Positions 1,791 through 30,753 of a stretch of 30,753 nt of DNA are shown here, piece by piece. The notes under the pieces were generated by a model. The model did not search any database and had not been told where the DNA came from. It saw nothing but the letters and a program-made list of their open reading frames with translations. Origin of the DNA: Cyanophora paradoxa CCMP329 (taxonomy: Eukaryota; Plantae; Glaucophyta); the NCBI GenBank assembly GCA_004431415.1, contig QPMI01000020.1:1-30753 (forward strand), written 5' to 3'. The position numbers were made by a program, and so were the translations under genes. Position 1 is the stretch's first letter; the number at the start of each line of letters is the position of its first letter.

Positions 1791-1965
1791 CTCACACTGG
1801 CTCACCGTGCACAGTGCTCACACCAAGCCCCAAAACCCGCGCCATGCACAGCGAGCCCACGTTTAACCCCAACCTCCTCGGGACCCTCGGCTCGCCGACT
1901 TGGCGAGTCGGTTGCCCCGGCCCGCCCCGCCGCCGGGCCGCGGCCGGGCCCGCCCGCGGCGCCCT

Positions 1966-3640
1966 TTACGAGCGCGCCCGCTTTGCCCCTGGCAGAGCGG
2001 CGTCCTCGCACGCGTAAACGCCCCCGCCCGCGGCCGCCCCGAGGCGCGCGGCAAAGGGGCAGGACGGCCAGAGGGCCGCCGGGGATCGCGCCGCCGGCGC
2101 CGGCGCCGGAGAAGCCTCCTCCGGACCCGCCCCGACGGGGCGGGCGGGAGCGGGCGCCCCCGCCCCCGCGCGCGCGCCGCCCGCCCCGCAGAGCGCTGCA
2201 AAGGGGCAGGGCGGCCAGAAGGCCGCCGCGGGCCGCGCCGGCGCCGGCGTCGTCGACGGCACCCGGACGGGGTCGCGCCGCTCCCCGCCGCGGGGCTCGG
2301 GGTGCGCGGGGCGGGGGCGGGCGCCGCCGCCGGCGCGCCGCACGATCCGAAGCGCGCCGCAAACGGGCAGCGCGGCCAGAGGATCGCCGGCTCGGCCGAG
2401 CCGCCGCCGCAGCCGTCGTCCTCGTCCTCCAGGATGCCGACCACCCGCGCCACGAACTTGAGGGCGGCCGCCGCCGCCTCCGCGCGCTCCCACCAGCGGT
2501 CCTGGGGTCCAGGCGCCCGCGGCGCACCCCGAGCACCGCCAGGCCGTCCAGCTCGCCCCGGGGGCGCTTCGACATCCGCTCGTCCCGCTCCGACAGGCGC
2601 ACCTGCCCGGGCCAGTCGCACTCGGCGAAGACGCCCGCCTTGAGCTGGCCCAGCAGCTTATCGAAGAAGCCGTCGCCTGCACGACGGGCGGGGTCGGCCG
2701 CGGGGTCGCGCCGGGGGAGACGGGCGGGCGCGGCACGTACCGTATGAGACGAGGATCTGCGCGCGGGGCGGGCGCGTTCGTCGGCGGCGGCGGCGCGCCG
2801 CGGGGGGGGGGGGTTGGGCGCGCGGGGCGCACCTCGTCGTCGTCGTAGATGCACTTTGTGGCGTGCAGCCAGGCCGTCTGCGTGTTGCCGTCTCCGGCGA
2901 TCGTGGCGTTGTTCCGCGCAAACGGATAGCCGTTGTTCGCCCAGCGGCCCGTAAAGATCGGGAGGGAGGCGTCGATGAGGCAGCTCGAGTTGATCTGGAA
3001 CACGAACCTGCGTAAACGGGCCCGCCCCCCGCCCGTGAGCGGCGCGCGCGGCGCCGGCGCCGGCGGCGAGGGAAAGCGCACGTCCACCGCCCGGTCTTCT
3101 GGAGCTGGGCCCACTGGTGCGTCGGGCAGACGATCTTCCGCCTGCGCGCGCGCGTCGACGTCGTCCGGCGAAAGCGAGGGTCCAAGGGGCGGCGCGGCGC
3201 ACCCGTCGTACGGGCAGATGCGCTTCCGGAGCTTTGGGTGAAAGACGAGGGCGCGGTACGCCGGGCCGAGGAGGGCGGCCCGCGCCCGCGCGGCCGGCGA
3301 AGCAACCGCGAACAGGCCCAGGGCGCCCGGGACCGCCCTGGAGGGCCCGACTCGTAGCTACGCAACAATCAGCCGCGCGGGAGGTGCCGGCCGCTCGCCG
3401 CGCGGCCCGCACCGAGGCTCGTTCGAGGTGGTCCGTGCACAGCGGCGTCCGGCACCCCGTGGACGCCCAGCATCCCCGCGCGGCGCAGCTACGGTACTGG
3501 ATCGGCAGCTGTGATGCCTCCAGTAACAGGCGGGCCGAAAGCTCGCCGAGCTTGTTCGTCGGGTCGCTCTCGCGGATGATCCGGGCGCGCACCGCGGCCT
3601 CGGCGCTAGAATGGCGGCCCGTCTGGGTGGGTCGCTGCAT
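1966..3640 (-). CDS. SET-domain lysine methyltransferase (viral/TE-type) with Cys/His pre-SET motif and C-terminal WPxCPFAA repeats
   Basis: In-phase GT-AG splicing of exons ..-3413, 3357-3203, 3141-3082, 3007-2833, 2756-2741 and 2676-.. gives CAARGCWASTGCRTPLCTDHLERAS-LRVGPSRAVPGALGLFA...ICPYDG...FVFQINSSCLIDASLPIFTGRWANNG...ATKCIYDDDE-ILVSY-GDGFF. These match SET motifs GxGLFA, IxxYxG, IDA..RxxN and EILVSYG. Stop at 1966-1968 inferred across frameshifts; 5' end uncertain (3640 may be an acceptor). Confidence 0.85.
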
Positions 3641-3685: not shown

Positions 3686-4720
3686 TTACGCGTACCCCCC
3701 TTCGACCAGGCCGCAGCTCGCAGGGCGGATGGAAGGGAACGGCCACAGCCGGCGCTGGGATTGGATCTCGGCGATCCGCGTGCCCTCGGTGGAGCAGACG
3801 TCGCCCGGCTTGCCCCGGAGCACTACGCGCTCGCTTCGATGAGCTCTACGCATTCGAACCCACGAAGCTGAAGGTGAGCGACGCCGCGCGCCTCCGTGAT
3901 GGCCGCGCGCGAACGCCGACCGCACTTCGCGCCATGACCGCAGGGAACCGTGGAGCAGCTCAAGCCGGCCCAGATCATTGCCTTGTCGAGTATGATCAGG
4001 GCGCAACTTGGAGCGCGTGCGTCGGCCCGTCCGGGCCCCGCGCGCCGGTTGCTGACGGTGCTATCAGAATGCGCAGCGCTCGCCGACCCCGCGTAAACAG
4101 CCTCTTCAGTCGCTGCCCGAAAGGATCGCACGTCGTCGCCTCGTGCGGCGCTGTGGATTGCGCCGATCCCCGGAACGTTCTCTGCCCGGGGTGCGAGTCG
4201 ACCATGTCCGAGCATGCGCCGTTTACCAGCAATGCCGCTCGCGAAGAGCTACCATGCGACCGCCGTTCCATTAAAGTTCCGAATTGGAGTTCTTTGATCC
4301 CCCCACACGGTGGGAGACGCGACGGCGGTCCCGAGCTCGCGGACATTGCCTCGGTCGTCAAGCCAAGGCCGGCGAAGCCCCCCGGCGGCGGACCCGGTGG
4401 CGAAGCGTCGGCGCGGCCGCGACGCGCCGTAAATGCGCGCCCGTTCCCGCCAGCCCGGCGGCCCATCGGCTCCCACTCCCAAGCCATCAACCCTGGCGGC
4501 GGCGGCGCGACCGGAGATGGCAAGCGGCAGGAGACCCCGGCACCGCGGCGGCCGCCGGCGCCGCGCGCGCGGCGGCTCCGGCATCGGCTCCAAGTACGCG
4601 CCGGGTTCTGGCAAACCGCAGCCGTCTCATTCGAACCGCCGCGCAGGCCGGAGCCGGGAAGTACACTTCAAGGACACGAAGGCGGTCAGCGGTGCTTGAT
4701 AAGATGACGAGCCGTAGTTG
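3686..4720 (-). CDS. Probable upstream exons of the SET gene or a separate hypothetical protein (frameshifted)
   Basis: Protein-like minus-strand segments in shifting frames (VPGIGAIHSAARGDDVRSFRAATEEAVYAG; CALIILDKAMIWAGLSCSTV; VVLRGKPGDVCSTEGTRIAEIQ) and a gtacgc...tgcag intron linking to ~3634. Function not recognised. Confidence 0.3.
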
Positions 4721-4757
4721 AGGGCGACGATCTGTCCGCCTCCGGCCACGCTCGCGA

Positions 4758-7006
4758 ATGCATACAACGGCTCGGCTACGACATCTCCAAGTGGTGCCTC
4801 ATTTCCTTTTCCCCTCTTCCACGCGCGAGCGAGAGCACCCGGCGCGCAGCGATCCGCACCCGTCAGTTCTCAAGGACGAAGACGAAGACGAGAGCGAGGA
4901 AATGAGGAGAGAGAAGGACGAGAAGAAGGAGGAGGACGACGAGAAGCCCCCACCACAAGCGCCACGGCGACCACGCCCTCGCAATCGAAGGAGGAGTGAA
5001 GTCGGCGCCCGGACCAGCGTATGCACCTTTCTCCACGTTTGCTAACCGGGCGCGCAGGCTGCGAAACGAAAGGCGGGCGGCGACGGCGACAGCGGCCGTC
5101 GACGTCGCGAGGGCGGGACATGGCGGTGCTTCCGGCTCGAAGCCGGCGCGGGGTGCGAACCCGCCCGCCCCGGTTCTCGCCGCATTCTCACGTGAGAGCC
5201 GATCCAGAGGCCGCGGCGGCAAAGCACAGGCATCTTCGGGATCGCAAGGGCGCCAGGAATCGCTGGAGGACATCGGGATCAAGCTCAACGCTCCGACATC
5301 GTGGACGAACCACGTTGTGCGTCCTGTTCATTATCGATCCTCAACTTGCGTTTACCAACAGGCCTCGCCGAGCAGAAAGGAGTCGTTCGAGACGAAGACC
5401 TTCCTCAGGGGTTTTAAAAGCGCGGAACTGATCGAGAGAATCACGAACCACCTCCGACGGTCCACGCAAAGTTCCCCTCGATCGAAGGATCAGTGGGACG
5501 GTCGCAAAGGCCTCGTCTCCCTCTTCATCCTCATCGGCGACCACCTCGGCTGGCCCGCCATCCACCCGTGCGTCCCGTTGGAACCGCCGTGTTATCACTC
5601 TCATCATCGGTTTGACCCACCTTGCGTCATCAGTGGGCAGAATCTTACAAAAGGTTCCACAAGATTCAAGAGCAAGGGAAGCTCGGCGAGACCTTGTGCG
5701 CACCCCAGCGCAAGTCCCGTCAGCTTGTATTACCATCGTTCTCATACAGCTGGAGGCCTACCGGGTAGCCGAAGAGCTCGAAGAGATGAGGAGAACGACG
5801 ACGGCGGTGCAGGTAAACGTGGCCGTTTACCATTCTTTCCTTTCCCTCCCCACTCCGCGGCTCTTTACTCGCCCTTCGTCGATAACTAGGTGGTGAGGAG
5901 GAGGAGGCGGAGAGGCGGCGGCGGAACCGGCGGAGGAGGCGGAGGAGGAGGAGGAGGTCAAGAAGAAGGGCAAGGGCGGGAAAACCGACCGGCCGTGCGA
6001 AGCCGCCCCGCGTCGCCGCGCCCCACTCGCGCTCGAATCAACCTTGCCCAGGAGTATGCCGCCCCCGCCCCCGCCAACCCGCACGCAAGCCCCGCCGCCG
6101 CTCCGAGCGCCAGGTCCGTCTCCATTGATCCCTCCCCGGCATCTCCTACCCCTCCAACGCTGGCCGCAGCGGCGCCGGCAGTTCAAAAAAGAGCCGCGGG
6201 CGACGAGGGGGAAAGCCGCCCGAAAGCGATCCCGCGGAAGGTACAAGGGCGAGCGCGGAGGCGGCGAGATCGAACGCGACGCCCCGTCCACGTCCGCCCC
6301 GCGCCCGACCCGCGCTCGTTCGACTTTCCGATCCCGCCCGCATCGCGCAGGCCGGCGGCGAGCGCGCGTCGGGGCCGGCGTCTGCGGCCAGCAAGGCTCG
6401 CGGCGGCATCGCCCGTGGCGCGCCTGCGGCAGCGACTCCAGTGCGTCGCCCGCGTGCACGCCCCCGCCCCGTTCCGCCCGGCCCGCCCCGCCCGCCCCCC
6501 GGCCTCCGCCCGCCCCGCCCGGCCGGCCCACCCAGGCCCGCCCTGCCTCCCCGCCCGCCCGCCCTCACGAGCCGGGCGCACGCACAGGGCCCAAGACGCG
6601 GCTGCGACCCCCAGCCCAAAGAGGGTGCGCCCTTCCCCACCACCCCGCCGCCACAGTTTACAACAGGACCGACGCAGATGCCGGCGATCGCGGGGGGCCC
6701 CGGGTCCGTCCGGCACCATGGTGCACTCGCTTGGCGTGCATTTTGGCGTAGACGACAGCCGCGTGCTTACGCCAGCACGCGCAGGTCCTCGTGGACCAGA
6801 AGAGAAAAATATGCTCGAGCGGTTCAGGAAGAGAAGAGACAGCTGCGCGCGGAGGCCCGCGCCGGAAGCAAAGGACCGACGGCTCGGCCAGCAAGCTCGG
6901 CGTCAATGCAGCCGCGCCGTCCGAGCTAGAGTCGGTGGAGAACGCCCCGACGACGCGTAGGCGGCGCCGCGCTTGCACGCCCTCTAGGCTTCGATTTAGG
7001 ATCTGA
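4758..7006 (+). CDS. Multi-exon hypothetical protein, acidic/basic low complexity; weak SAP-like helix
   Basis: Series of short GT-AG introns (about 5019-5057, 5317-5361, 5568-5633, 5714-5749, 5813-5889) joining segments such as KDEDEDESEEMRREKDEKKEEDDEK, FLRGFKSAELIERITNHLRR and LEAYRVAEELEEMRR; frameshifts obscure the 3' half. Confidence 0.45.
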
Positions 7007-8900: not shown

Positions 8901-11270
8901 GTTCTTGGGCGGCGGCCGCGGCGGCGGCCGGTGGCGCTCCCGCGCCTCCCGGCGGTGCGCCGCGGCGGGCCTCGGGGCGGCCGCGCCGAGCCGCTGCATG
9001 ACTCCTCGGCAGACGTCGTCACGTCGATCGCCCCGTTCGTCGCGCGGTACTCGACGGGCACCGCCGCGCGCGGTAGGTGTAATCGTCCGGCCGCCTCGTT
9101 CGAGGGCGTCCAGAGCGTGCCGAACCTGCGCAGAACGACGAGCGGTTCTCCTGCTGGCCGAGGCGAGCCCACCGTCGCGTGAGCCTCGCAAGACCGTCGT
9201 GGTAAGAGGTCGCCCGCCGAGTCACCATCGCCGCCACGACGCTCCGCGCAGGCATGGGGCTCGGCGTGATCAGGCGTATGTGCCAGGGGCCGGCGGAGGC
9301 GCCATCTCCTCCGCTCGCGCGGCGCCGGCGGCCGGCGGCCGCGCGGGGCGACCCCGCTTCGGAGCTCGTCCAACCCTCGCCCTCGTCTTCCGCGGCGGTC
9401 CCGGACGCCACGTCCCGCCGCCGCGGCGCGCTCGCGGCGCGGGGCCTTGGCGTCGGATCCTCCTCTCCTCTTCTCCTCATCCTCTCGTCGTCGTCGTCGC
9501 TCCGACGCGCGCCTTGGCGTGCGCGGCGAGCAACGATGGCGGAGATGCTCTGGGGTCCGAAGATGCGTCGGCACTCGGGACACCAGCGCCCTCGGCGCGG
9601 GCGAGCTCGCGCTCGACGCGCAGGCCCTCCTTCAGCTCCTCGAGCTCCGCCGTCTCGCTCTCCGAGCTCCGCCCTCCTCCCGTCGTCCGAGGCGGCGGCG
9701 GCGGCGGCGCCGGCGGCGGCGCCGGGCTCGCCTTCCCCTCCTCCCGTCCCGTCCGACGAAGACCGCCCTCCGGCCCTCGAGCGCGGCAACCGTCGGCTTC
9801 TCGAGTTCGCCGGCGGCGCGCTCGAGCCAGGCCAGCGCCACGCACGCCTCTTGCCGGTGAGCGGCGGGGCCGGGGTGCGGGGCGGGGCGGCGCACCTCGC
9901 GCTGCGTCTTATTGCAATCGTGTGCATCGTCGCCGTCCGCGGGGTGTGCTGGAGGAGGCGCGCCGTCCTCGATGATGCTGTGCAGACGTCGCCTCGATCC
10001 GCCCTGGGCCGCCTGATCGCGCACCAGGTCGTCACGACGGCGCGCATCGTCCGCGGCGGCACGGCGACGCCGTCCAGCGGCTCATGGCCTGCGCCGGGTG
10101 AGCCCGCCCCGCGCCGGCGGCGCGCCTCGCCTCACTGTTTCGCGAACAGGGTCCAGGACCCGCGGCGAAACGCATCGCCGCCGGAGGTGAAGAAGATGTA
10201 CCCCTGGTCCTTGGCGCCCTCGCTCAACAGGTGACGCCGGAAGCTCTCACGTACTCTGTTAGCGGCTCTGACGCGCCGCGCGGCAGCGGTCGACGGAGCG
10301 CGCGCGGGCGGGCGGGGCGCGCACCTGGAGCTGCTGGGCGACCGGACGATCACGGCGCCGTGCCGCTTCTGCGGATGGGGGCGTCGGCGGCGCGCGTCCG
10401 GCGCGGCGCGGCGGGAGGCCCCGCACCGCCGTCTTGTGGGTGAGCGCGCCCTCCTCGGAGCCGTCTGGATCCGCATGCTCAGGATCGACATGTTCCACCG
10501 ACCGTTGTCCTTGCGCAGCGTCTCGCCGATCTTCAGGTGCTGAGGAGGCCCGGCCGCGCCGGCTGATCGAAAGGAACCAAGCAAGAGAGATTCCTCAGGT
10601 ACTTCGCCTTTTGCCGCGGCCGCTCCTCGGAGCGAAACGCGGCGTAGGCTCGACGCGCCGCGAACGACGTCCTCGAAGCGGACCCACGTTTTCTCGTTCT
10701 CCACTTCCGTTCCGCCTTGGACTCGGCGACGAGCTGGTTCTGAGGGTGCGCGCGGCGCGTCGGCGCGCCCCCGGGGGCGGCGGCGCGGGGCGGGAGGAAG
10801 CTCACCGCAGGTTGCGCAGGGCCTGACCGTGCGGGCCCTCGCTCCCCGCCGGCGCGCCGCCCGTCCCGCGACAAAGGCGGCGAGGTTGATGAGGGTGGAG
10901 GCGTAGCTCACGAGCGTCCGGGCAGCGTGCCCCGCTCCTCGCGCAGGAACCTGCCGCGGCGTTTGGTAAACGCCCCCGCACCCCCCTCCACCGCGCCCGC
11001 CGCCCGCCTCACTTGAAGAAACGAAGCACGATTTCGACCGCGTCGACCCGGCTCATCAGATCGAGGTGAGCTCGCCCTCCAGCCCTCGCGCATGCGGACG
11101 TAGCCCAGCAGCCGCTGAATGATGCCAGTCGTTCGCCAGGCTCGAGTTTCGACGGCGTGCCCTTGCGCGAGGCGTTCAACGGTGCCTGTCTCCACTCCCG
11201 ATAGGCCGCGAGCTGCAGTTTCAGGCCCGACTAAACGCGCCCTCGTGCAGGGCGTACGGCTGCCGCGCCT
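8900..11270 (-). CDS. Tyrosine recombinase (phage-integrase fold), intron-containing, frameshifted
   Basis: Ordered motifs: N-terminal PYALHEG..LQLAAYREWRQAPLNASR..IIQRLLGYVR; catalytic Arg in PARPGLLSTLKIGETL (~10555); Lys in HKTA (~10430-10439); GYIFFTSGGDAF; PRTMRAVVTTW (HxxR-equivalent, ~10045); ARLLQHTPRTATMH-[Y]DCNKTQRE (His 9946-9948). The nucleophilic Tyr needs one T restored at 9921/9922. 3' end approximate. Confidence 0.8.
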
Positions 11271-13366
11271 CGCCGGCCGGGGCGAGCCGGTCCGGGCGAC
11301 GGCGAGCGCGACGGGCGCGGCGGCGAGCCGACGGCGGGCGAGGCGGCGCGGTCGATGGGCGTGAGCGGCGCGCGTCGCCGTCGCTGCCGCCCTCGTCGCC
11401 TCGGCCTCGCTCTCGGACGACGACGAGCTCGCGACGAGGACGAGGGGTCCCCGGCGCCGCCGGGCCCGCGGCCTCGATGGCGCCCGCCCCGGCGGCGCGC
11501 GGCTCGATGCGGGAGCGCGACGGCCCAGCTGTCGACGTCCTCGTCGATCTCGAACAGGCGGAGATCGCTGGTGTCGACGATGGCGCTCTCCAGCAAGGAC
11601 CGGTACGCCTCTCGCCTGCGGGGGCGGGTTCGGCGTGGTGGGGGCGGGGCGGGGGCGGGAGGGCGAATAGAGGCACCTCGTGCGATGAAGCGCGTGTTTT
11701 TAGCGCCGAGCTCGCTCGTAAACGCCTCACCAGACTTTAGGAATCCGATGGAGCCGTCGTTCAGGTACTCTTCCACGAGTACTGCGTCGCCGCTCCAGCG
11801 CGAGGCTCTCGGCGAACCACAGCGCCCATATCCCTGGTGCGCGCGGTTCGCGCGCGTGCGCGCGCGCGGGCGAGGGCGCCGGCCTTACGCAGGAGTGACC
11901 GTCCGTTTGCAGGCGATCGGGAAGCTCCGTGACCCACGTAAACGACGGCAAGGCCTTGCTCGCCGCCCGCCTCAACCTCGGATCCGGCGGCGCGCCGAGC
12001 GAGTCAAAGTACCTGCACCGCCTGCGGGGACGCGGTGCGCGCGGTCGTGGGAGGGGGCGGGGGGATGGGGCGGGCGCGTATACCGGCTCGCGCCGTCGAG
12101 GGCGAGCGTGACCCAGTGGCCGCGCGTCGTCCACGTCCTCTGCGCGCCGCCCTGCCCCCGCCGGTGCAGCCAAAGCACAGAACGAGCCCGCCGTTTGCCG
12201 CGTGCCATAGCGCCGCTTTCGGCGCTCTCGTCGCTCATCTTGGCGTATCGCCGCAGGATCGAGACGATGGTGTCGAGGCTGGCGGGGTACAGGGCCTTGG
12301 CGCTCGCGTTGGGCTTCATGCGGTGCAGCAGGAGGGTCATCACGTTTGCGAGCATCGTATCCTACGCGCGCCCGGGGTGAGTGCGGCGCCGGAGGGGGGG
12401 GGGGGGGGCGGGGAGGGGGGGTACCGTTAGCCACTCCCTCTTGGAGAAGATCGCCAGGCGCCGCGCCGGGCGGGCTCGGGCACCATCAAATCGATCTCCG
12501 CAGGATCGTGGCCTCGGATGGCGAGCGAGGCCCTCTTGAACGCGAGCCGAACGCGGGATCCCGGCCCGGAAGCTTGGCCAGGAGCTGCTCCGCCCCTCGA
12601 GGCTCAGGAAGGACCACTTGCGAGCCGACCCAGGTTCTCCTGCCCCGCCTCGCCGGAGAGCGCGAGGAAGCTGACCAGCGTTCTCGCCAGGGTGGCAAAG
12701 TGGGGCGCCCGAGCGTCTTCGTCGTCGCGAGCCAGCGGTGCGGGCTGTTCTCTCCGAGGCTCGGGTGGCTCCTCGCGATCTCACGCCGCACGCTGGCCGT
12801 GTCCTTTGGGCCGCCGTAGATGCACTGGGCGATGCTGGCGAGCGGGATGTACCAGGGCGAGACCTCCGGAACTTCGAGCCGGCGGACCTTCAGAGCGAAG
12901 AACCTCGCCCCGTCTACGTGGAGCACCTTGACGTCGCACCGCTCGAACGTCTCCTGCGTCCGCCGCTCGATCGCCGAGGTGAGGTCCCGGTAGCAGTGCC
13001 GCAGCCGCGGGCTGTCCGACCCCTCCAGCAGATCGACGCCAGCTCCTCGACGTGCTGGAGGGAGAGGACGCGCGGCGGGCTCTCGGTCGGGTGCAGCTGG
13101 CCCGCGGCACGATCGCGAGCATCTCCAGAGGAGGATGAGGCTCTCCGTCTGCGGGCCGGCGATCGGCCTCGACGCGAGGCCGTGCGGTCCGGTGAGCTGC
13201 CTCGCCGCCTCTTCCGCCGCCTCGGCGGTCCGTTGCGAATATGCGCTGAACCTGGGCAGGGCGGCCGCGGGCCCGGCGTCGGTGCGGAACACGTGAGGCG
13301 CTCGGGCCCGGCGTAGGCGTCGAACGAGACCACCTCCCACGAGTCGCGCGCAAACGCGAGCGACAT
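11231..13366 (-). CDS. Ulp1/SENP-like (clan CE, C48) cysteine protease with N-terminal putative DNA-binding region; probably the N-terminal part of the YR gene
   Basis: ATG at 13364-13366 (gccATG). Spliced KREWLT-DTMLANVMTLLL, GHWVTLALDG (His 12116-12118), YFDSLG (Asp 12003-12005), LQTDGHSC-GIWALWF (Gln; Cys 11889-11891) give the H-D-Q-C order of Ulp1/adenain proteases. One base is missing at the C|GIW junction. Confidence 0.82.
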
Positions 13367-13836
13367 GGCGCCGCTGCGCCCGCGGCCTGCGCGCGCCTCG
13401 ATAGCAAGGGCCTGCGCGCTCCGATTTATGCGTTGAAAGAGGACGCGGGGAGCTTGCGGGTTAGGGGCGGGTGCGCGTGGGCGGGGGGAACGAGCGACTG
13501 TAAAAAAAAAATGGGACGGCGTAAACGGGGGGGGGTACGTTTGGTCCCCGTAAACGCCGATCCGGCCACTCGGATTCCCGTAAACCGTGTCGAGACGATA
13601 GCTTACACGCAGCTGCGGTAGTTTGCTTGGCCAGCAATCCGCACACAAGCTCGGTTCTCGGGTACCTCTATCGGCGGGCGTGGTCGCGCCCGCTTCGGGA
13701 ACTTGCACTTTCCGATCGATTCCGACACCGCCGGGCGTGTCCAAAGTCTCCGGTAAGCATTTCGACCCTTTCGGACGTCGTCTGCGGCTAACGGTCGCCG
13801 CGGCGGCCGCCCGTTGCAGGCGTCGCCTCGGCGGGC
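13367..13836. promoter_or_regulatory. Putative bidirectional promoter between Ulp1-YR and TET/JBP
   Basis: ~470 bp between divergent ATGs (13366 and 13837); lower GC, an A-tract at 13502-13511, three CGTAAAC motifs (13520, 13549, 13579). Confidence 0.5.
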
Positions 13837-16829: not shown

Positions 16830-17271
16830 ACTATAGGAGTGAGAGTCGGCCTCTGGATCTGGGTCATGATCATGACATGTACATATGCATGCATGTCTCC
16901 ACGTTCTGAAATGTACATGTACATGTCGCTCGAGCTCCGGTCCGGGCCCGCACCAGCTAAGCTTAAGATATGATTACTATTAGGCTTCAAAGGCTTCAAG
17001 GCTTAACTTAAGTAAGCTTGTATCATAGTTTATATAATTATATACGTATACATATCTTGACAGCTACGTCCGACCGTCGGACAGTCATGATCATGATCAC
17101 TATGAAGCTTAATTATAAGCTTGGGAGTCATGATCGCTATAAGACTTAAGCTTCAAGGCTTGTATCTTTTTGGAACGATGATACTATGATATAAATTAAA
17201 TTCCATCTTTCAAGTTTCAATGATCATGATCATGATCATGATCATGATCATGATCACTGAGTCATGATCAT
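16830..17271. repeat. AT-rich palindromic filler with (TGATCA)6 microsatellite
   Basis: TCATGA, TGTACA, AAGCTT and TACGTA chains; (TGATCA)6 at 17221-17256; same character as 1-1790. Confidence 0.75.
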
Positions 17272-17294
17272 GAGGGCCGCCGGGCCGGCGGGCC

Positions 17295-17755
17295 GGGGCG
17301 AGATCTCGAGTTGACTGGGGGGAACTAGAAACGCTTAAGTTTGATAGCTCCATCACTGAATAGCTTATATTCTGCGGCTCGAGTGCCTCTTCCAAGAGCG
17401 TCGGGAGAAAGGGCCGCGGGGCCGGCGCCGCGCGGCGCTGCGGCGCGCGGGGCGAGATCAGAAGTTGACTGGAGGAGCTAGAAACGCGCGAGTTCGATAT
17501 CTCACTCACCGAATAGCTCATATTCTGCGGGGCGGCCGCCTCTTCGAAGCGCGTCGGGAGAAAGAGCCGCCGGCCGCGGGCCGGCGGGGCGAGATCAGAA
17601 GTTGACTGGGGGAGCTAGAAACGCTCGAGTTCGATATCTCACTCACCTAATAGCTCATATTCTGCGGGCGGCCGCCTCTTCGAAGTGCGTCGGGAAAAGG
17701 AGCGCTAGCCGCCGGGTCGGCGGGGCGAGATCAAAAGTTGACTCGGGGGGGAACT
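17295..17755. repeat. Tandem repeat, ~136-154 bp unit, 3 full copies plus a partial
   Basis: GGGGCGAGATC starts at 17295, 17449, 17586 and 17722, each followed by AGTTGACT(G/C)G; the three full copies continue CTAGAAACGC..AATAGCT.ATATTCTGCGG..CCTCTT..GCGTCGGGA. Confidence 0.9.
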
Positions 17756-18921: not shown

Positions 18922-19721
18922 TCAGCCGCTCTCCTCCTCGCGGATCCGGCGGCGCAGCTGGATGTCCTGGGCGCGCGCGGCGGCGGCGGGCGTCGGCGCG
19001 CGCGGCGGCGGCGGGCGGCGCGGGCCCCCACCTTGGGCTGAATCGTGATGCGATTCCGGTGAAGGGCGAGCAAATTCGCTCCCCCGAGCACGTTGATGGC
19101 GTGCATTTCGGCCGCTTCGCGCATCGCCAGGATGGCGTCCTTACTCCATCTCAGGTCCTCGGCGGTGAATCCGGCCTCTACGCGGCGCTTCTTCTCGTCG
19201 TCAGCGATCTCTTTCACCTGCCGGTCCGCCCCGTCGCCCGGCGCCCCGCGCCCGGCTCACTCCGGGCTCACCAGGCGCTCAAAGGGAGCGAATCGGATCA
19301 AAGGGTTGAAGGTCTTCTGGTACTTGCGTATCTGCGGGGTGCGTTTACGCCCGCCCCGGGTGCGGGGAAGCGACGGTTAGCGGCGGCGAGCGGGGTACGG
19401 CGTCTAGTTGGGGGGCGGGGGAGGGTGGGGAACGGGCCTCCCTGAGCGCGACCGTGCCTTTGGCGCCCGGCGCGCACCTCTCAACCGCGGCGCGCGCAGG
19501 GACCGCGCGGGAGGGGCGCGGCGGACGCACCTGGGCGGTACCTACGCGCGGCGGTCACGTGCACGCGGCGACGCGCGCGGGGCGGACGGGACGGCGCGCC
19601 TGTGGGGCTTCTTTACGCCTCCCGCCGCCGGCGCGCTCTTCCGAGCGGCCTTGGTGGCGAGGCGCCTGCGCGGGGCCATGCTCCCCGTCGATTTCTTCCC
19701 CGCCTGCTTGATTCTTGCCAT
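18922..19721 (-). CDS. Divergent histone H3 variant, 147 aa (H3-like tail, CenH3-like histone fold)
   Basis: Six exons (19721-19600, 19541-19531, 19457-19438, 19331-19272, 19217-19032, 18966-18922; two GC-AG introns) splice without frameshift to [147 protein letters not shown]. Confidence 0.95.
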
Positions 19722-20132: not shown

Positions 20133-20928
20133 TCAATTGCAATGTAAACGAGATATCAAACTCTGTGTAGACCGTTTACGGGCCATGCTCCCCGTAAAAC
20201 GCATCGTGGGCGGTAAACGCGGCGGCGGGGCTCGCGGGTGCCTGCAGCGCCGCCCGTCGCTGCTCGTCGCGGCGCCAAAGTAGGAGCTCCTTCCGGCGTG
20301 CGCGATCCTCGCATTTACGCTGCGCGGCGGCCTCGGGTCGGGCCCGTGGCGGTCCTCGGCCCAACGGCGGGTCGACGCCAAGTCGTACCGCTCCTCGAGC
20401 GTTCGGGGCAGTATCCCACGGCGAGTATTCCTCCGGGGACGTTGAAGAGACGGCGGTCGAGTCCGAATCGCTCGGAGAGCGCGTCGGCCGAGTCGGCGCC
20501 CGGCGGGGCGCGGGTCTCGCGCCGCCGGTCGGCCTCGGACATGGCGGCCGCGCGCGTGGTCCATCCGGGTGGCCGGTCAGTTGGGGGAGGGCACGGGCGG
20601 CCGACGCCGGGAGGGCGGCAAACGTCGCCGCGGCTCGGAGTCGGACCGGCGCGCAGCAATGGGCGCAGGTGCGTTTACCGGTGAGCGGGCACTGGCCTCC
20701 GTCGTTGCGGCGCCGGCAGGATGCGCACGCGGAGAGCGTTGTTTGGGAGAGGATGCTGCGCGCGGCGCTCGTTGGGAGGGACGGTGGGATGCTGACGCCG
20801 ATGAGGAGGAGCTCGCGCGTCGTCTGGGCGTCGCCCGCGGAGATGGGCATGGTTATGGGCGTGTCGGTGGCTTTGATATCGATGCTCGAGCGCGCCCCCG
20901 GGACCGTGGATGGGGCTTTTATGTGCAC
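20133..20928 (-). CDS. Zinc-finger protein with XPA-like C-terminal region (frameshifted)
   Basis: CASC...CPLTGKRTCAHC, then AAATFAALPASAARALP, ALSERFGLDRRLFNVP and ERYDLASTRRWAEDRHG, resembling the XPA Zn/DNA-binding layout. Boundaries approximate. Confidence 0.4.
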
Positions 20929-20957: not shown

Positions 20958-21805
20958 ATATGGGCGGGCGGCGGGACCCCTGGGGGCGGCTGGTGAGAGC
21001 GGCCGCCGGCGCCGCCGCGGATACGGGGCGGGCGGGACCCCTCGGGGTGGCTGGTGAGAGCGGCCCGCCGGCGCCGCCGCGGATACGGGGCGGGCGGGAC
21101 CCCTCGGGGCGGCTGGTGAGAGCGGCCCGCCGGCGCCGCCGCGGATACGGGGCGGCGGGACCCTCGGGTGGCTGGTGAGAGCGGCCCGCCGGCGCCGCCG
21201 CGGATACGGGCGGGCGGGACCCTCGGGCGGCTGGTGAGAGCGGCCCGCCGGCGCCGCCGCGGATACGGGGCGGGCGGGACCCCTCGGGCGGCTGGTGAAA
21301 GCGGCCCGCCGGCGCCGCCGCGGATACGGGGCGGGCGGGACCCCTCGGGTGGCTGGTGAGAGCGGCCCGCCGGCGCCGCCGCGGATACGGGGCGGGCGGG
21401 ACCCTCGGGGCGGCTGGTGAAAGCGGCCCGCCGGCGCCGCCGCGGATACGGGGCGGCGGACCTCGGGCGGCTGGTGAGAGCGGCCGCGGCGCAGCCGCGG
21501 ATACGGGGCGGGCGGGACCCCTCGGGGCGGCTGGTGAGAGCGGCCCGCCGGCGCAGCCGCGGATACGGGGCGGGCGGGACCCCTCGGGCGGCTGGTGAGA
21601 GCGGCCCGCCGGCGCCGCCGCGGATACGGGGCGGGCGGGACCCTCGGGTGGCTGGTGAGAGCGGCCCGCCGGCGCCGCCGCGGATACGGGGCGGGCGGGA
21701 CCCTCGGGGTGGCTGGTGAGAGCGGCCCGCCGGCGCCGCCGCGGATACGGGGCGGGCGGGACCCCTCGGGGCGGCTGGTGGGAGCGGCCCGCCGGCGCCG
21801 CCGCG
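20958..21805. repeat. Tandem array, ~60-bp unit, 14 copies
   Basis: Unit GCTGGTGAGAGCGGCCCGCCGGCGCCGCCGCGGATACGGGGCGGGCGGGACCCCTCGGG(G/T)CG; 14 GCTGGTG cores counted; variation mostly 1-bp indels in G/C runs. Confidence 0.95.
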
Positions 21806-22090
21806 TTTACGGGGAAGGCTCTGGGCTATGTAGTGTACCTAAAATCACTAGAAGGTGGCGAACTGATACTGGCTATATCCTAGTTATTCGTACACATGCC
21901 CGACTATAGATAATTTTATACGTTCCCCGTTCTCCTAAGTGTATCATGGTATCCTAAAGATCTAAAAAGATAGTATCCTAAAGATCTAGTCAGTAATTCG
22001 AGTCGTCGACATGAAGACGTACGAAACTCTAGATCTGAATACTTAGTATTTTATCATACCAACTGAAAATATTACACGTGCACGTTTACA
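21806..22090. other. AT-rich core between two GC-rich arrays (candidate origin or regulatory hub)
   Basis: ~285 bp AT-rich; direct repeat GTATCCTAAAGATCTA twice (~21949 and ~21974); bounded by CGTTTAC motifs at 21804 and 22083. Confidence 0.5.
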
Positions 22091-22094
22091 ACCG

Positions 22095-23490
22095 CGCACG
22101 TCGCCGTGGGGCGACCCGGCTCGCATCAACTTCCCGAGGGGTCATTCGGGCCTCCTACTGCGCGGCGCCGGCGGCACGACCTCGCTCCCGTCAGCGACGA
22201 CTCGGCCCTGCTGCCGCCCGCCAACGCGTCGCCGCGGGGCGGCCCGGCTCTCATCAACTTCCCGAGGGGTCCCCCCGGCCTCTACTGCGCGGCGCCGCGG
22301 CACGACCTCGCTCCCGTCAGCGACGACGCGGCCCTGGCGCCGCCCCGCCCCGCCCACGCGTCGCCGCGGGCGGCCCGGCTCTCATCAACTTCCCGAGGGT
22401 CCCCCGGCCTCTACTGCGCGGCGCCAACGGCACGGGCGCGCTCGCGTCAGCGACGACGCGACCTCTGCCGCCGCCCCGCCCGCCCACGCGTCGCCGCGGG
22501 GCGGCCCGGCTCTCATCAACTTCCCGAGGGGTCCCCCGACCTCTACTGCGCGGCGCCGGCGGCACGACCTCGCTCCCGTCAGCGACGACTCGGCCCCTGG
22601 CGCCGCCCCGCCCCGCCCACGCGTCGCCGCGGGGCGGCCCGGCTCTCATCAACTTCCCGAGGGGTCCCCCCGACCTCTACTGCGCGGCGCCGGCGGCACG
22701 ACCTCGCTCCCGTCAGCGACGACTCGGCCCCTGGCGCCGCCCCGCCCCGCCCACGCGTCGCCGCGGGGCGGCCCGGCTCTCATCAACTTCCCGAGGGGTC
22801 CCCCCGACCTCTACTGCGCGGCGCCGGCGGCACGACCTCGCTCCCGTCAGCGACGACGCGGCCTTAGCCGCCGCCCCGCCCGCGTGTCGCCCCGGGGCGT
22901 CCCGGCTCTCATCAACTTCCCGAGGGGTCCCCCGGGCCTCTACTGCGCGCGCCGGCGGCACGACCTCGCTCCCGTCAGCGACGACGCGACCTCTGCCGCC
23001 GCCCGCCCGCCCACGCGTCGCCGCGGGGCGGCCCGGCTCTCATCAACTTCCCGAGGGTCCCCCGGCCTCTACTGCGCGGCGCCAACGCACGGGCTCGCTC
23101 GCGTCAGCGACGACGCGACCTCTGCCGCCGTCCCGCCCGCCCACGCGTCGCCGCGGGCGGCCCGGCTCTCATCAACTTCCCGAGGGTCCCCGGGCCTCCT
23201 ACTGCGCGGCGCCGCGGCACGACCTCGCTCCCGTCAGCGATGACGCGGCCTTAGCCGCCGCCCGCCCGCGCGTCGCCCCGGGGCGTTCCGGCTCTCATCA
23301 ACTTCCCGAGGGTCCCCCGGCCTCTTACTGCGCGGCGCCGGCGGCACGACCTCGCTCCCATCAGCGACGACGCGGCCCCTGGCGCCGCCCCGCCCACGCG
23401 TTGCCGCGGGCGGCCCGGCTCTCATCAACTTCCCGAGGGTCCCCGGCCTCTACTGCGCGGCGCCGGCGGCACGACCTCGCTCCGTCAGCT
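22095..23490. repeat. Tandem array, ~130-bp unit, 11 copies
   Basis: CATCAACTTCCCGAGGG cores at about 22124, 22251, 22382, 22513, 22646, 22779, 22909, 23039, 23169, 23294 and 23422; unit continues CCTCTACTGCGCGGCGCC..GCACGACCTCGCTCCCGTCAGCGACGAC. Confidence 0.95.
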
Positions 23491-23643: not shown

Positions 23644-24154
23644 TTACGTAAACGTTGACATCTCCAGATCGTCTTTTTCCACAGATATCCTGAGAGCAGC
23701 GCGCTTCGGCGACCAGATACCCGCCTTGATCACCGCGAGCCGCATTTCCGCCTGTTTACGACGCCACTCGCGATTCCGCTCCGAGTGCACGCGCGGCAGC
23801 ACGTTATCCCTTTGTGTACTCGTCCAATGGCTTTGTTTCCTTGCACCTCCAGCACCGGCGAGCTTTGCGGTCCGCCCATCCTCGACGACGACCACCACGG
23901 CGCGAGGCCGGACCGCCGGAGTTCGAGGATGCAGCGCGTTAAACGCCTCGCGCATTGCGCGCTTCCGCGCCGAAACGCAGGCACGGCACTCGTACGTGTG
24001 CATTCTGATCTTGGAGGGCGTATATTCCGACGCCGGCTTCCTCGTTCGACAGCGAGTGCACCACGCCTCGACGACGCGCCCTTTATCGTCCCGGACGGCA
24101 CCGCGGACAGGTCCGAGGGGCTCTTTGGCGCGAGACGTTGGAATCGGAATCCAT
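23644..24154 (-). CDS. Small CxxC-x21-CxxC zinc-finger protein (Stc1-like or endonuclease-associated Zn ribbon)
   Basis: WCTRCRTRKPASEYTPSKIRMHTYECRACVSARKR followed by basic helical segments; stop 23644-23646; likely ATG at 24152-24154 needs one frameshift. Confidence 0.5.
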
Positions 24155-24451
24155 GCCGTCGCGAGCGAGGACGTGGGGTGACGGTGACCACGCTCGATCC
24201 CCGAACCAGGACCTCTCCCTTTTATGCGTCCACCCTCCCTCGCCCCTCGCCCCCCCCCCTCCCGCTTCCCCCTCCTGCCCCGCGCGAGCGCCGGGCCGGA
24301 TCGACGCGCGCGTTTACCATGCCCGCGCGCGGGCGACGGACCCGCCCGCACGCCCCCTCCCCCCCCCCCACCCCTTCCATGGGCCCCCCGCCGAGGATCG
24401 AGACCATAAAAGGAAGCGCGCGGCCGTCGCCTCCTTACCCCCATCCCCACC

Positions 24452-26623
24452 ATGCCGCCGCCACGCAAGCGGCAGCGCGCGGCGTCCACGTGCGTCTTCC
24501 CGCGCGAGGTCCTCGCAATGATCGCCTCGCATCTCGACGCAGAGGATCGCGACGCTTTCGCGAGCGCCGCCGACGAGTGCTACGTCGCAACCATCGACGC
24601 CGAATCGACCATGCCCTTTTGGAAGCAACGCCTTGCCGCACGCGCCGGCCCGCTCGTCCGCCGCGCGGCGGGCGCTGGCGTCCCGAGGGCGAGTGGGCGT
24701 GCGGCGCGTCGCCCCCAGCCCCGACGCGCGCTGGTTCGCCGTCGAGCGCGCGCCCGCCTCGCTCGCGATCCAACCCGAGGCGCTCCTACGCATCGACCCT
24801 TCCGGCGCCGTGGACACGCTCCCCGCGGCCGTCCTCGCACGCATGGAACTCCGCCCGCGCCTCTCGGGCCTCTGGGTGGCCGACGACGGCGAAGTTCGCT
24901 TCCAGGCCGCTCCGTTCAACGCCGCGCCGACGAACCGGGGTCGATAGTCTCCTGGCCCGTCGGCGCCCCACCCGCATCCTCTTGGACCTCGCCGAGCACG
25001 CAAACGCGATCATGGCGGAAGCGCAATCGTTTCACTCCAGGCCGGCCCACCGGATTAACGCACGCTGCACCTCTGTTCTATTTACCATCACCGACGCCCC
25101 CAACGCCACCACAACGCCGACGCCATGGCCAACGGAGCGGCTTTGCTCGTGGTAAACGTCGGCGACGGAACCGCGAGGCGCATCGAGCTCGCCCCGCGGG
25201 CTCGCCTCTCGCCAGCATCAATACCCAAATGATCGTCCCGTTTGCCGACGGCTGGCTCATTGCTTGTTCAGAGGAGCGGGAGTCTTCGTCGGCCCGACGG
25301 TCAAACGATGCGATCGCCGGCAGGGCCCTCCGAGACCGGAGCAGAGTCTCCTACCTGGCGGACGCGTTTGCAAGTACGCGCGCGCCGAGGGCGACTCGAA
25401 GGACGAGCTCGGATTCTTTCGCGTGAGCCACGACGGCCGCGCGAGCGAGGTGAACCCCCGCCCCGCGTACTCGCCCTCTACGGCCCGACCTCGTCCACCA
25501 TCGTCGCTTGGGCCGCCGCGGCGCGCGGCCCCGCCGTCGCCGTCACCATCCCCACCATGCAAAGCGGATTTCGCATCGTCGAAGTACCCCCGCGTCCGCC
25601 TGGCTGGACTGTTTGTGAATCGAATGGAACCAACCTATTTCGCACGAATCCGGCGCCGCCACGCGCTCCTTAGAGCGCGCCCGCCATCGCACTTTTGCTC
25701 ATTCCACATCCGCGACACCATGAACGCGCGGCCTCGCGTCCTTTACGAAGCAGCCGCAGCGCGGCGACCCGAGCGCGGGCTTCCCATCCCCGACGGCGAG
25801 AGCATCGTCTCCGGCTCGCTCGCCACCTGCGGCCCGTTTACCGCCTATGCAACGCCGCCGCCGACGGGACCCCGCTGTCGCTCTTCCTTTGCCACCCCGC
25901 CGCGCGCGCGCCCGTCGCCCTCGGGCGCTGGCGAGCGCGGCGTGACCGTCGACGTCCGCTCCTCCGCGCGCGCGCGGGCGTCCTGACGGCCATTGCCCGC
26001 ATCGACCTCGCCGCGGCGCGCGACAGCCCGCTCCTCCGGTGATCCCAAGGCCCTCGCGGACGCGGAGCGCCCGTCAAACGCCAAGGCCGACGCGCGCGAC
26101 TCTGCCGTCCTCCTGGAGTGGTCCGCGCACGGCGACAACGACGCGCCGGCGACCGTCGCCCTCTGGCTCGACCCCGGGCGCGCCGCCGCCTGCAAGAGGC
26201 CCGCACGGACCCGGCCGGCGCCCGCTTCCTGCGCGACCTCGCGGAAACGCGCTCGCCCTCGTCTGCCGCGACGAGCGCGGCCTCGACTCGCTGTACGTCT
26301 CCGACGGCGCCACCGCGACCTTTCGGCACTCGGCATCGCCCGCGCGCGTGGACCGAGGGTCAAACCTGTTTCCCGTCGAGACGGGCTGGTTCGGTACAGC
26401 CTTCGATGGCTGGCGCGTCCTCTTTGTCTACCCGACGGCAAGTTTGCCTTTGTCGAGATCGCGTGATGAGCCGTCGCCGCCGTCTGCCGCTCGGCGGCCC
26501 ATGTACGCGTGCCGCTGCACCGACGGCACGCTGATCTCGCTGGAGACGAGGCGCACGGGCGAGCCGCCGCCGCGCGTCGCTGCTCCGGCGCGCCCGATGG
26601 CACCGCCCGCCGCCGTTGCGTAG
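24452..26623 (+). CDS. F-box protein (frameshifted, no clear introns)
   Basis: caccATG; MPPPRKRQR (NLS-like), then VFPREVLAMIASHLDAEDRDAFASAA (F-box consensus) and FWKQR; downstream beta-strand-rich fragments in shifting frames to a TAG at 26621-26623. Confidence 0.6.
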
Positions 26624-26706
26624 GCCTCCGCGCCCCCCATTCCCAGGTCGAGACCGTTTACGATTAGAAATGTGATTGTATTAAAAATTGAGCGCAACGC
26701 CTACGT

Positions 26707-29700
26707 TTACAAAGCACTGCCGCGGTATGCAAAGGTAACGCTGCGCCGCCGGCCGGCCCGCTCGATCTCGCGGTAGCGATTCGCCTTTGCGGAACACCCC
26801 GGCGCTCTGGGCGGCGTCTTCCACGTCTCCTCCTGCCACTTGTCACCGCGGCGATTCCGCTCTCGGAGGACGTGTTCAGGAACCACCCATCCGTCCCCGG
26901 AGGAAGTCACCGTCGGCTCGCGTCCCATGCACGTGTACGTCTCGAAGAGCGACCTGCAGACGAGGATGTGGTCGCCGCGGCCGCGCCTCTCCGATACGGC
27001 TCGGCGAGACGCGGCTGTGCCGTGCTCGGCCCTCCACCGAACCACCTGCTCGCAGAGGCGCGCACGTCGTCCTCGGTGGCCGCGATTCGCAGTTCGTGGC
27101 CTCCTGGAGGCCGTCTCGGCACATTGCAGCGCGTTTACGACCCCCGCGCACCGTCGTGCCGTTTACGTCCCAATCCAGCACCGGCTCGCCTCTGGCGACG
27201 AGAGCGCGCGATGTACAACGTCCCTGACGTCGTAATCGCACAGGACACCGTCCTCTGGGTCAGCGACGCGCGCGCCTCGGCCGAGAGCCAAAGAACGGTT
27301 CTCCGCGGATACTCGGCTCGGGGGCTCTCGGTAGGGTATCTTCTGATCGTGCGCGCGCTGCTTGGCCGCTTTGATATCCGCCGCCCTCTTCTTTGCACGT
27401 CCCAGCACCGTCGCGCCGCCGCCAGGACCGTAAACGCCAGGTGAGCTGGCCAGTCGGCCGCCAGGGTCGGAACGTGCCGAGAGGGACGTAAACTGTCGAA
27501 CAGAGCGGGTTGCCCGTGCGATGGCACCAAAGTATCCTTGCACGAAAGGGGAGGCGACGTGCTCGATGCCTTGGCGTAGAGTTCAGAGGACGCCTTCGCA
27601 TCCGACTCGACCAAAGCACGCCAGGGCCGACCAAACTCGTCCGCGCCCACTCCAGCACGCGCAGGCGCTCGATCTCGGTGCGGATGGCGTGTCGTCCGCG
27701 CCGGCCGGGTCGAGCACGTTCAAGGGCCCGAGTCCGTCAGCCGAGCGAGGCGCTCCCTCCACGCCGCGCCGCGCTCAGCGAGCGAGCGTCCGGTGCGGCG
27801 CCACGAGCAGCCTGCCGTCACCTTGCGCAGCTCCTCCACGGCCGCCGGCTCGCCGTCGCGCCCGATGCGCAGCACCGTCTCGCCGTGATGCGCTCCCCGG
27901 GGCGAGCCGCCCCGTAACGACGTCCAACGTTCGAAAGACCTCGACGCGACCTCGTCCTCGAGGGCGCGCCGGCCGCCAGCATGGTCGAGAGCTCCTCGAG
28001 CTCGCCGCGCGCCACCTCGACGGCGCCTGCCGCAACGCTCCCGTAAAACAGGGCCCGCGCCTCGTCCCGCACGGATGGCTTTGCGAGCGCCCGGCCGACG
28101 GCGGCGACGGGCAGAGCGTCATCCGCATCCCCGACCCCGACCGCCCTCTTATGCACGCCTGTCGTTCGCCGGCAGTCGGAAAGTTGCGCTCGAGGAGCCC
28201 CGCCTCCACCGAGATCGTCGCCTCCAGCGTGCCTTGGTCGCATCGTCAAAGAGTCGCGCCCCAGACGTCCAGCCCACGCGCACCGCCGAGGTCGCCAACC
28301 CCGGCGGGTCGTGGGGCGCCTCGGAGAGGGCGATTCGCAAGAGGGGCGCCGCCACCGCGGCGTCGGCGACGGCGCCGCGCCCGCGCGCTCGAATCCACGA
28401 CGTGCCGGAGCGCGAGCAACGCCGGGCACCGCACCATCTCCAGCAGTTCCCGAAAGCTGCGGTCCGCGTGCGCCTCGTCCGTAACGTGGGCTGGAGAACG
28501 TACGTCGACCGAGCGCGCCGGGGCGGCCGCCCATCTCCACCTCGAGCGCGTGGAGGAGGTTCCTGAGCTCGGGTCGATTCTTCTTGCCGTTGGATCCTGG
28601 AGGTACCAGACGATTATCGCGGGCGCCGAGCTCCTCCGGCGCAACGCAAAAGGCCTGCGCGGCAAAGGCGAGATCGAGCGACGACGCTCGTAGTCGTTGG
28701 ATCGCCCGGTGGGCCCTGCGAGCCGTAAACAGCCGGCCCGCCGATTTCTCCTGTGAGACGTCCTCGCCGGGGAGGGCGCGCGCGCCGAGGACCGGGTGGG
28801 CGATGACTTGCAGGCGAAGAGCTCGCGTAGCGCCTGGATCTCCTCCTTTACATTTTCGCCGCGGAGCGCTGAAATCAACGACGACCACGCCGAGCTGCCG
28901 CCGAGAGGAGCTTGGCGTTAAAGGACGAGATAGCTGCGGCGCGTGTGCGATTCGTTGGCCATCTGTGGCCTGACGACGGAGGAGGGCGTTTTCCTGCGTG
29001 GGGTTCAACCACTGCGCCGTCGCCACGCAAAGGCGCCGTTGTCGTGCTCCCTGCGAACGCCGCGCCCCTGTCGCGCCGCTCGCGTCGCCGGTGACTCCGG
29101 ACCTCGGCCCGCCGCGTTTCGAGGAGCTCGAGCGCGCCCTTGGCGTTCTCTTTGGGCTGTGTCCCGAGGGGGCAGAAGATGAGCGCGAGGGTCTCGGAAA
29201 AGGCCCGGCAGCGAGGCGTGAGCTGGTACTGGATGTTGACGTCCCCGAGGACGCCTCCGTGCACCACGCAGCAGACGTCAAAGAGCACGTGGGGTTCGTC
29301 CATGGAGCTCCCTTGAGCGACCGCGGTGTTGTAACATATTAAGTCCAGCTCGGCGAACCGGTTCGGGTCGGAAAAGAGCCTGCGATCGCGATCGTCCGAG
29401 TTGCCGCAGACGAGGGCCCTGCGGACGTGCGCGAGGTCCGGGTGGCTGTCGACAACGGCGCAGATCGCGTTGAACTCGTCTTTGGTGGTCGAGGAGACGA
29501 TCACCTTGTAGCCGAGGAGGAGCAGCGCGGCGACGCGCAGCCCGGCTTCAGAGAGCGGGAGCGCGGCCCACGCGTGGCGCATGTCGCCCCCCGCCCCGTG
29601 GGATTTACGATACAGGATGCGCTTTGTCCGCGCCGCGCCGGTCCTCCCCGCGAGCGCCACCCCCTCGTCGTCCGAGTCCCCGCCGCCGTCTCCCCCCTCG

Positions 29701-30753
29701 GAGGCGTTTACGTCGGGTCGTGGCTCCGAATTGCCCATGTCGAGGACAAATCGGAGCGTCTCGCGGTCCAGGTCGGCGTCTGCGAGATAAACGACGCGCG
29801 CCGCGGCCAGCATCCGCGCGAGAGCCTTTGCCGCGGCCGCCTGGCGTAAATCCTTGGCGAGGGTGCCCGACGAGCTGATGATGGCGGCGATCTTGCCGAC
29901 CTCGTCGATGACGAGGATGTGGTACGGCGAGGCGCCCTGGACGAACCGATGGGACGACTCGGCCGTCACGAGCAGGGCGTCCGGCGCATCGGAGCCCGCC
30001 TTTCGCTCCTCCCTGTACCCGATCCAGCACCGCTGCACCTCCCTCCCCTCTTTGTCCACGAGTCCGCGAAACACCGCCCGAAAGTCGTTCCTCTCCTTGA
30101 GCTGGTCGGGATGGGAGCGGGAGTTGACGAACCAGGCGATCGAAACGGTCGTGTCCTCGGCGAGGTTCGCGATCGTTGGGTCCCGGACCACCTCTGCGGC
30201 CGACCTGAGGATGGCCGTCGACTTTCCGGCGCCCATGCCCTCCTCCAGCACGACGTAAACGCGCTCGTATCCTTCCGCAAAGGCGCGCGCAATGGCGTCG
30301 TGGATGAGCCTGTCGTCGACGTAAACGTTTGTCACGTCGGGATCCACGATGATCTCGTCCATCGCGTCGTCGATCTCCCCCCTCTGGGACAACAGACCCC
30401 TCATCCAATCGTCCATCTTGCCGGGCTCCGGGAGCTGAAAGCCCGTCCGCAGCGCGCCCCGCTCCTTGCGGCGCTCCTCTTCATTCAGCGTGGCCCACTT
30501 TTCGGCGATGCCCTCGAGCGTCCAAAAGGTACCCTCGCCGCCGAAAAGCCTCGCCGTCGCCTCGGCCACCCGCTCGATCTCCGCGACGTGCTCGGCAGAG
30601 GCCGTGCCGCACCCCTCGAACGCGCGATTCGCCGTCGCACCGAACCGCGCGGCGTCCATGTAGTGCTCCCGCCGCTCGACGGCGTCCCGACCGAGGTTTC
30701 CGAAGCGCGCCTCGTCGGCGGCGACCTCGCACTGCCGGAGCGCCTTGAGCGCC
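26707..30753 (-). CDS. Origin-binding-protein-like SF2 helicase (herpes UL9 / NCLDV type), 5'-truncated by window, frameshifted 3' half
   Basis: VVLEEGMGAGKST (Walker A, ~30217-30240), WFVNSRS, LLVTAESSHRF, ILVIDEVG (Walker B, ~29900), VYLADADLD, LICYNTAVAQGSSMD, YQLTPRCR: motif order and wording of UL9-like helicases. Frame stays open upstream of 30659 to the window edge. Extension to ~26707 is inferred from protein-like fragments. Confidence 0.8.

Follow-up and report, generated by a model that had tools for sequence, protein, structure and literature searches.

A candidate virus-like integrative DNA element with a UL9-type helicase and a histone H3 gene in Cyanophora paradoxa

Cyanophora paradoxa carries a real, repeated family of virus-like elements, which is old and so far known only from this organism. 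The window analysed here, a stretch of 30,753 nucleotides, belongs to tig00000104, a contig in the PacBio assembly of C. paradoxa (PMC6704402), and contains a repeated block of at least 29 kb, the window edge cutting through a helicase gene. A human or a prokaryotic source of this DNA was rejected. Our favoured reading, at about even confidence, is that a virus-like integrative DNA element has recently been duplicated and that the window shows the left 29 kb of one of its copies. We give a similarly balanced weight to the functional side of this reading, namely that the element is integrated by a recombinase, is able to replicate from its own origin and carries cargo directed against host silencing.

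The helicase gene at the right end (26681..30753, minus strand) encodes a UL9-type SF2 helicase with a long C-terminal region and corresponds to residues 424-1769 of the model P0002, its open reading frame matching EukProt model tig00000104_g4819 at 100%. The full protein comprises about 1,770 aa, with a primase-like N-terminal and Zn-ribbon part beyond the window. SF2 motifs I-VI are present, and the best match is an origin-binding protein. A profile built from six family members matches the HSV-1 origin-binding protein (E 5e-8), and UL9-type proteins rank first when the predicted structure (pLDDT 66) is compared by Foldseek with viral and PDB libraries, the fold neighbours being herpesvirus and giant-virus proteins. 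The assignment of this helicase to the UL9 type is thus confirmed statistically.

Relatives of the helicase are restricted in distribution. Seven matches were obtained among 1.84 billion proteins and an eighth was added by cluster look-up; all eight are EukProt models, and the seven that are named come from C. paradoxa, where they occupy six contigs. No relative outside EukProt was found among the 1.84 billion proteins, and a scan of viral and metagenome contigs likewise returned no relative. The subfamilies are 22-31% identical to one another, form two supported groups and represent at least five deeply diverged lineages within one genome. In addition, P0003 and P0008 are identical over 619 aa and are both encoded on tig00000042, 23 gene numbers apart, a pattern that speaks for a recent duplication in this family. 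In P0005 and P0006, the N-terminus contains DxD and SGxKGFH motifs of primase type, with a Cys-rich ribbon after them, and P0005 matches Pfam LigD_Prim-Pol at E 0.0016, below the cut-off; the primase motifs are degenerate in P0002, P0008 and P0004. P0005 corresponds to g9756 on tig00020509 and lies amid the no-hit genes g9742-g9766 (PMC6704402, Table S5), as expected of another element copy.

To the left of the helicase lies an arrangement of inverted repeats. A 61-bp unit is repeated 14 times at 20966..21814 (minus strand), and a unit of about 130 bp is repeated 10.7 times at 22099..23489 (plus strand); both arrays flank an AT-rich core of 284 bp (21815..22098). Read as its reverse complement, the 61-bp unit shows homology with the 130-bp unit in the core of the latter, so that the two arrays share a core of about 55 nt with 70-77% complementarity in opposite orientation. 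Positioned beside a UL9-type gene, this arrangement resembles a herpesvirus origin, and the AT-rich core is accordingly a candidate replication origin by analogy. Alternatively, it could represent an end-to-end junction, in which two element ends with subterminal repeats meet.

A spliced gene with six introns (18922..19721, minus strand) encodes a histone H3 variant, an assignment confirmed statistically by the Pfam Histone profile (E 1.3e-9) and by the match of the tail exon to H3.1 (E 6e-14). Relative to H3.1, the tail carries T3I, T6A, R8K, K14M and K18R, with K4, K9, S10, K23, K27 and K36 kept; it is near-canonical, and a divergent non-canonical tail of CenH3 type was not found. The histone-fold exon is closest to Cse4, its best PDB match (37.7 bits, compared to about 31 for canonical H3), and displays hallmarks of CenH3/CENP-A, namely a W at F84, the absence of Q68, a changed T107 and a longer loop 1. 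Such fold hallmarks occur in non-centromeric H3 variants too and are no proof of centromeric function, and centromeric H3 proteins do not usually have a canonical-like tail. Two of the six introns apparently use GC donors.

The SET-like gene (1966..3640, minus strand; EukProt g4810) is located nine gene numbers away from the helicase gene (g4819). It has short introns and an N-terminal Cys/His motif, and its database model P0009 maps exactly, matching the window exon by exon and including the private indels of the contig. The motifs GLFA, CPYDG, GRWAN and ILVSYG follow one another in order, and the usual NHS reads NNG. Judged from these motifs, the gene very probably encodes a SET protein, and no Pfam or PDB match was obtained even with complete database models. 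An exon search recovered nothing but three near-identical models, located on tig00000104, tig00020538 and tig00020539; the copies differ from one another by indels only. Both tig00020538 and tig00020539 carry ordinary host genes elsewhere on the contig, indicating that at least some SET copies are chromosomal. These two contigs may overlap each other, and the three contigs could be a partly redundant assembly of one locus. Copies of helicase and SET were seen at the protein level.

Three further candidate genes were recognised by ordered catalytic motifs. The gene at 11490..13367 (minus strand) contains HW, YFDSL and QTDGHSC in order, forming a His-Asp-Cys triad with an oxyanion Gln (His at 12118, Asp at about 12005, Gln and Cys at about 11909-11890), preceded by an upstream domain; we have considerable confidence in its assignment as an Ulp1/C48-type cysteine protease, a prediction that comes from the motif order. 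Alternatively, the enzyme may be a maturation protease of virus type and not a SUMO protease. An exon-wise library search returned no match for this gene. The domain 5' of the protease (12711-13037, minus strand) shows a faint excisionase-type match (E 0.33) and is possibly DNA-binding.

In the same direction lies a spliced and frameshifted gene (9900..11230, minus strand), in which SAM-like core-binding helices are followed by R, K, xxxR and H motifs (RPG, HKT, RTMR and LQHT, in order). It is likely to be a tyrosine recombinase (YR) gene and probably extends to about 8000; the position of the Tyr nucleophile cannot be read because it falls on a frameshift near 9940. A homologue search with individual frames, Pfam, a profile of 11 phage integrases, PHROGs, NCBIfam and PADLOC all gave no match for the YR. 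A weak match to the bacterial domain Ntox47 (8867-9199, minus strand; E 0.0023, below the cut-off) lies 3' of the YR motifs and may be due to chance. No clear stop separates the protease from the YR, and frameshifts occur in the region; the two may form one protein in a single reading frame.

On the opposite strand, the gene at 13837..16112 (plus) carries HRD, LRHGDV, LEHEV and YCIVF in order and contains an HxD...H triad, with HxD at 15664 and the distal His near 15905. In all probability, it encodes a TET/JBP-like 2OG-Fe(II) dioxygenase, as far as motif content allows such an assignment. For one exon, the alignment with a phage TET-like protein stays in register over the HxD and the GD strand, with a family-level z of only 1.6. 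Neither a profile of 10 phage TET sequences nor exon-wise library profiles gave a match, and a published TET/JBP member falls below the Pfam cut-off even at full length. The phage Cooper gp2 (L092:785-1753), annotated as queuine tRNA-ribosyltransferase, matches Pfam Tet_JBP at E 4e-6, so that its annotation is likely an error passed on between records.

The motif chains of SET, Ulp1/C48, TET/JBP and YR each lie on one strand, split by short introns. In the window, every chain is found a single time, and 200 shuffled windows yielded no full chain, a significance that is overstated because the patterns were written after inspection of the sequence. None of the four genes was found by Pfam, NCBIfam, PHROGs, PADLOC, PDB or two home-built profiles. 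The full-length proteins searched (P0001-P0011) were database models, and YR, TET and Ulp1 were searched only as separate exons or natural frames; these exon-sized queries probably explain some of the YR, TET and Ulp1 negatives. Searches of phages and plasmids by tblastn, exact look-up of ten open reading frames, and Rfam and tRNA scans all gave no match, and a single-sequence fold prediction (pLDDT 38) was counted among the negatives.

The remaining open reading frames are less informative. A spliced gene without family match, delimited approximately at 4700..6960 (plus strand) by codon-likelihood segments, encodes acidic and basic low-complexity sequence. Coding segments further define a Cys-containing open reading frame without match (20176..20928, minus strand) and an apparently intronless, frameshifted gene (24452..26623, plus strand), which more probably than otherwise encodes an F-box protein according to its sequence (F-box-like E 0.07, below the cut-off). 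A small zinc-finger open reading frame (CxxC...CxxC; 23647..24198, minus strand) has a weak match to Stc1 (E 0.037, below the cut-off), the linker between RNAi and heterochromatin in fission yeast.

An earlier note, made from the letters of this DNA, had proposed a giant YR element with these genes, and its gene list holds to differing degrees: the UL9-like helicase and H3 gained statistical support in the profile and structure searches that it had called for, SET, Ulp1, TET/JBP and YR stand as ordered motifs without a match in such searches, and the F-box remains weak. The arrays around an AT-rich core are as it described. Its expectation of repeated and not single-copy genes is borne out by three SET copies, two near-identical helicases and a helicase family of eight models. 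No capsid gene was seen in the window, in agreement with the note, the contig being cut at its right end. The reported lack of a polymerase is correct for the window; however, part of the helicase lies outside, and in two relatives that part has primase-polymerase motifs. The label of a YR element is likely to be appropriate, as judged from sequence.

At the left end, GC content rises sharply near position 1800, from about 50% to more than 70%. Positions 1..1790, which we infer to lie outside the element, consist of palindrome-rich low-complexity DNA of about 50% GC, as delimited by the GC step and the density of palindromic hexamers. This flank contains a hAT-like MITE of 527 bp (617-1143) with the terminal inverted repeat TAGGGTTGCCG and the 8-bp target duplication CCGGCGGC. 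The GC profile and palindromic hexamers reveal a similar palindrome-rich low-GC tract at 16800..17270. Since it shares the composition of the left flank, the block may consist of two units, with this host-like tract as a possible boundary between them. Next to the tract, a repeat of about 137 bp is present three to four times (17284..17749, plus strand). A 111-nt segment occurs twice at 18034-18273, the copies lying 129 bp apart and being 86% identical. The hexamer GTAAAC/GTTTAC was observed 39 times at 1800-30753 (about 5 expected) and was absent from 1-1800; it is found on either side of the 16.8-kb tract and also at both edges of the AT-rich core. Some, though not all, of these sites are intron branch-site-like. 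GC content and GTAAAC enrichment are equal on both sides of the tract.

P0002, a second helicase model of 1,769 aa, maps across 26684-30752 in dozens of exact, frame-changing blocks, and a frameshift-aware comparison over 2,378 bp yielded 743 matches, 68 one-base and 6 two-base deletions, and a single substitution. We reject decay as an explanation for the right-end frameshifts, as 74 small deletions against one substitution are the pattern of long-read errors. Differences limited to indels, as seen for the helicase against P0002 and among the SET copies, thus indicate consensus error instead of decay in the regions compared. By extension from these regions, the frameshifts of the YR gene are presumably of the same origin.

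Three other readings of the window have to be weighed. It may be one end of a larger endogenous DNA virus of polinton-like, giant-virus or mirusvirus type, whose capsid and packaging genes would lie past the contig end and whose capsids the Ulp1-like protease may mature; we regard this as possible, if rather doubtful. The herpesvirus and giant-virus neighbours of the helicase fold are consistent with such a virus, as are the giant-virus insertions present in C. paradoxa, the YR of some polinton-like viruses and the primase-SF2 helicase of some (PMC12220804), and the place of H3 among the mirusvirus core genes (PMC10132985). However, no capsid, polB or packaging ATPase was recognised within the 29 kb up to the cut right end of the contig, a Walker A scan of the window yielded no candidate ATPase, and no relative was present among the viral or metagenome contigs scanned. 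Moreover, the 156 catalogued glaucophyte elements of polinton-like virus (PLV) type include 85 with an rve integrase and 139 with an A32 ATPase, and none with a YR or a C48 protease.

It is unlikely, in our estimate, that two adjoining units in heterochromatin make up the block, unit A (1.8-16.8 kb; SET, the gene without family match, Ulp1-YR and TET) being a YR transposon that resembles Cryptons and carries cargo against silencing, and unit B (17.3 kb onward; H3, arrays, F-box and helicase) a replicative element. The flank-like composition of the tract at 16.8-17.3 kb would fit this division, and so would the gene numbering of tig00020539, from which we infer a contig starting near the TET gene (g10393 being the first gene seen and SET g10396), with the no-hit genes g10393 and g10395 set against g4814 and g4811 of tig00000104. 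The uniform GC content and GTAAAC enrichment of both sides, the spliced H3 gene on side B and the near-identical second copies that exist for both sides argue against it. It is very improbable that the block is ordinary host DNA, present through duplication or redundant assembly, with divergent chromatin genes and an H3 that serves as the host centromeric histone. The left genes do have short host-style introns, indels are the only differences between copies, and the H3 fold is nearer to Cse4 than to canonical H3; yet the helicase family, which is of virus type, exists in multiple copies and is without homologues elsewhere, the SET gene has none outside C. paradoxa, an origin-like structure is present, and the tail of the H3 is unlike that usual for centromeric H3.

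Returning to the single integrative element, its way of working is closest to that of polinton-like viruses with a YR or a primase-SF2 helicase, with which it shares its size class, a probable YR integrase, a probable clan-CE protease, a putative primase fused to an SF2 helicase (with intact motifs in two relatives) and multiple copies in a protist genome (PMC12220804). In contrast to these viruses, no capsid, A32 ATPase or terminal inverted repeat was found in the window (only one end of the element lies within it), and the C. paradoxa element has spliced genes and H3, TET-like and SET-like cargo; catalogued glaucophyte PLV-type elements differ from it in having neither YR nor C48. Herpesvirus UL9/oriS and the primase-UL9 fusions of giant viruses have in common with the element the helicase family and inverted, binding-site-like repeats around an AT-rich spacer. 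Identity is below 20%, the repeats here form long arrays, and no other herpesvirus or giant-virus core gene was seen.

Cryptons and fungal Starships are mobilised by a YR-type enzyme encoded by a spliced gene, and Starships carry large cargo; neither is known to have a replicative helicase or origin of its own. In the C. paradoxa element, the YR-like gene is internal instead of first and possibly fused to a protease, and DUF3435, by which a Starship or Crypton would be recognised, had no match in Pfam scans of the YR pieces. TET/JBP transposons (KDZ, Plavaka, hAT, Helitron; Chlamydomonas DNA-1_cRei) share a TET/JBP-like HxD...H gene as probable anti-silencing cargo (PMC12730594; 10.1101/2022.06.16.496473), and there are precedents for TET and SET cargo among DDE and Helitron transposons (PMC12730594). 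Those that are classified use DDE or HUH transposases, DNA-1_cRei having no recognisable one; no DDE-type transposase was recognised beside the TET gene among the selected frames scanned. A TET/JBP transposon with YR, UL9 helicase or histone was not reported in the texts searched. Mirusviruses, which belong to a herpesvirus-related realm, have H3 in common with the element (PMC10132985), whereas the window lacks the HK97 capsid, terminase, portal, polB and RNA polymerase. Literature searches, with limited coverage of subscription papers, found no description of the same gene combination, in keeping with the earlier note, which knew of no such family.

Overall, these results suggest an element, so far without a description, that copies itself and withstands silencing by its host. 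In the cycle that we propose, the tyrosine recombinase would integrate and excise a circular form, and the UL9-type helicase would bind the inverted arrays and unwind the AT-rich core, like UL9 at the herpesvirus oriS. Priming may be carried out by the fused primase domain in relatives with intact motifs, and the present copy, lacking these motifs, would need host or helper enzymes for this step. The spliced genes would act against silencing by the host. C. paradoxa shows 32% CpG methylation, and its repeats and viral genes are silenced (PMC12344493), which provides a rationale for such cargo: the dioxygenase would oxidise 5mC, the protease would strip SUMO-like marks, and the SET enzyme together with the variant H3 would set the element's own chromatin. 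The hybrid H3, with its canonical-like tail and centromere-type fold, might in addition attach the episome to the spindle or to host chromosomes. More tentatively, the element may be capsid-less altogether, combining YR integration, a nuclear episome with a herpesvirus-like origin and its own chromatin made by a 5mC oxidase, a SET enzyme, a deSUMOylase and the hybrid H3; that it represents a categorically new capsid-less class is a similarly speculative suggestion.

If the block is one unit, it brings together modules that had until now been seen in separate groups: a herpesvirus-type origin and helicase, recombinase-mediated integration, and several genes against silencing, a histone among them. 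An H3 combining K14M with a Cse4-like fold is worth study in its own right. As C. paradoxa is culturable and its methylomes are published, the escape of a selfish element from 5mC silencing is directly testable in this organism. Finally, the deep divergence of the helicase family within one genome, and its lack of detectable relatives elsewhere, suggest that comparable elements may have gone unnoticed in other protists.
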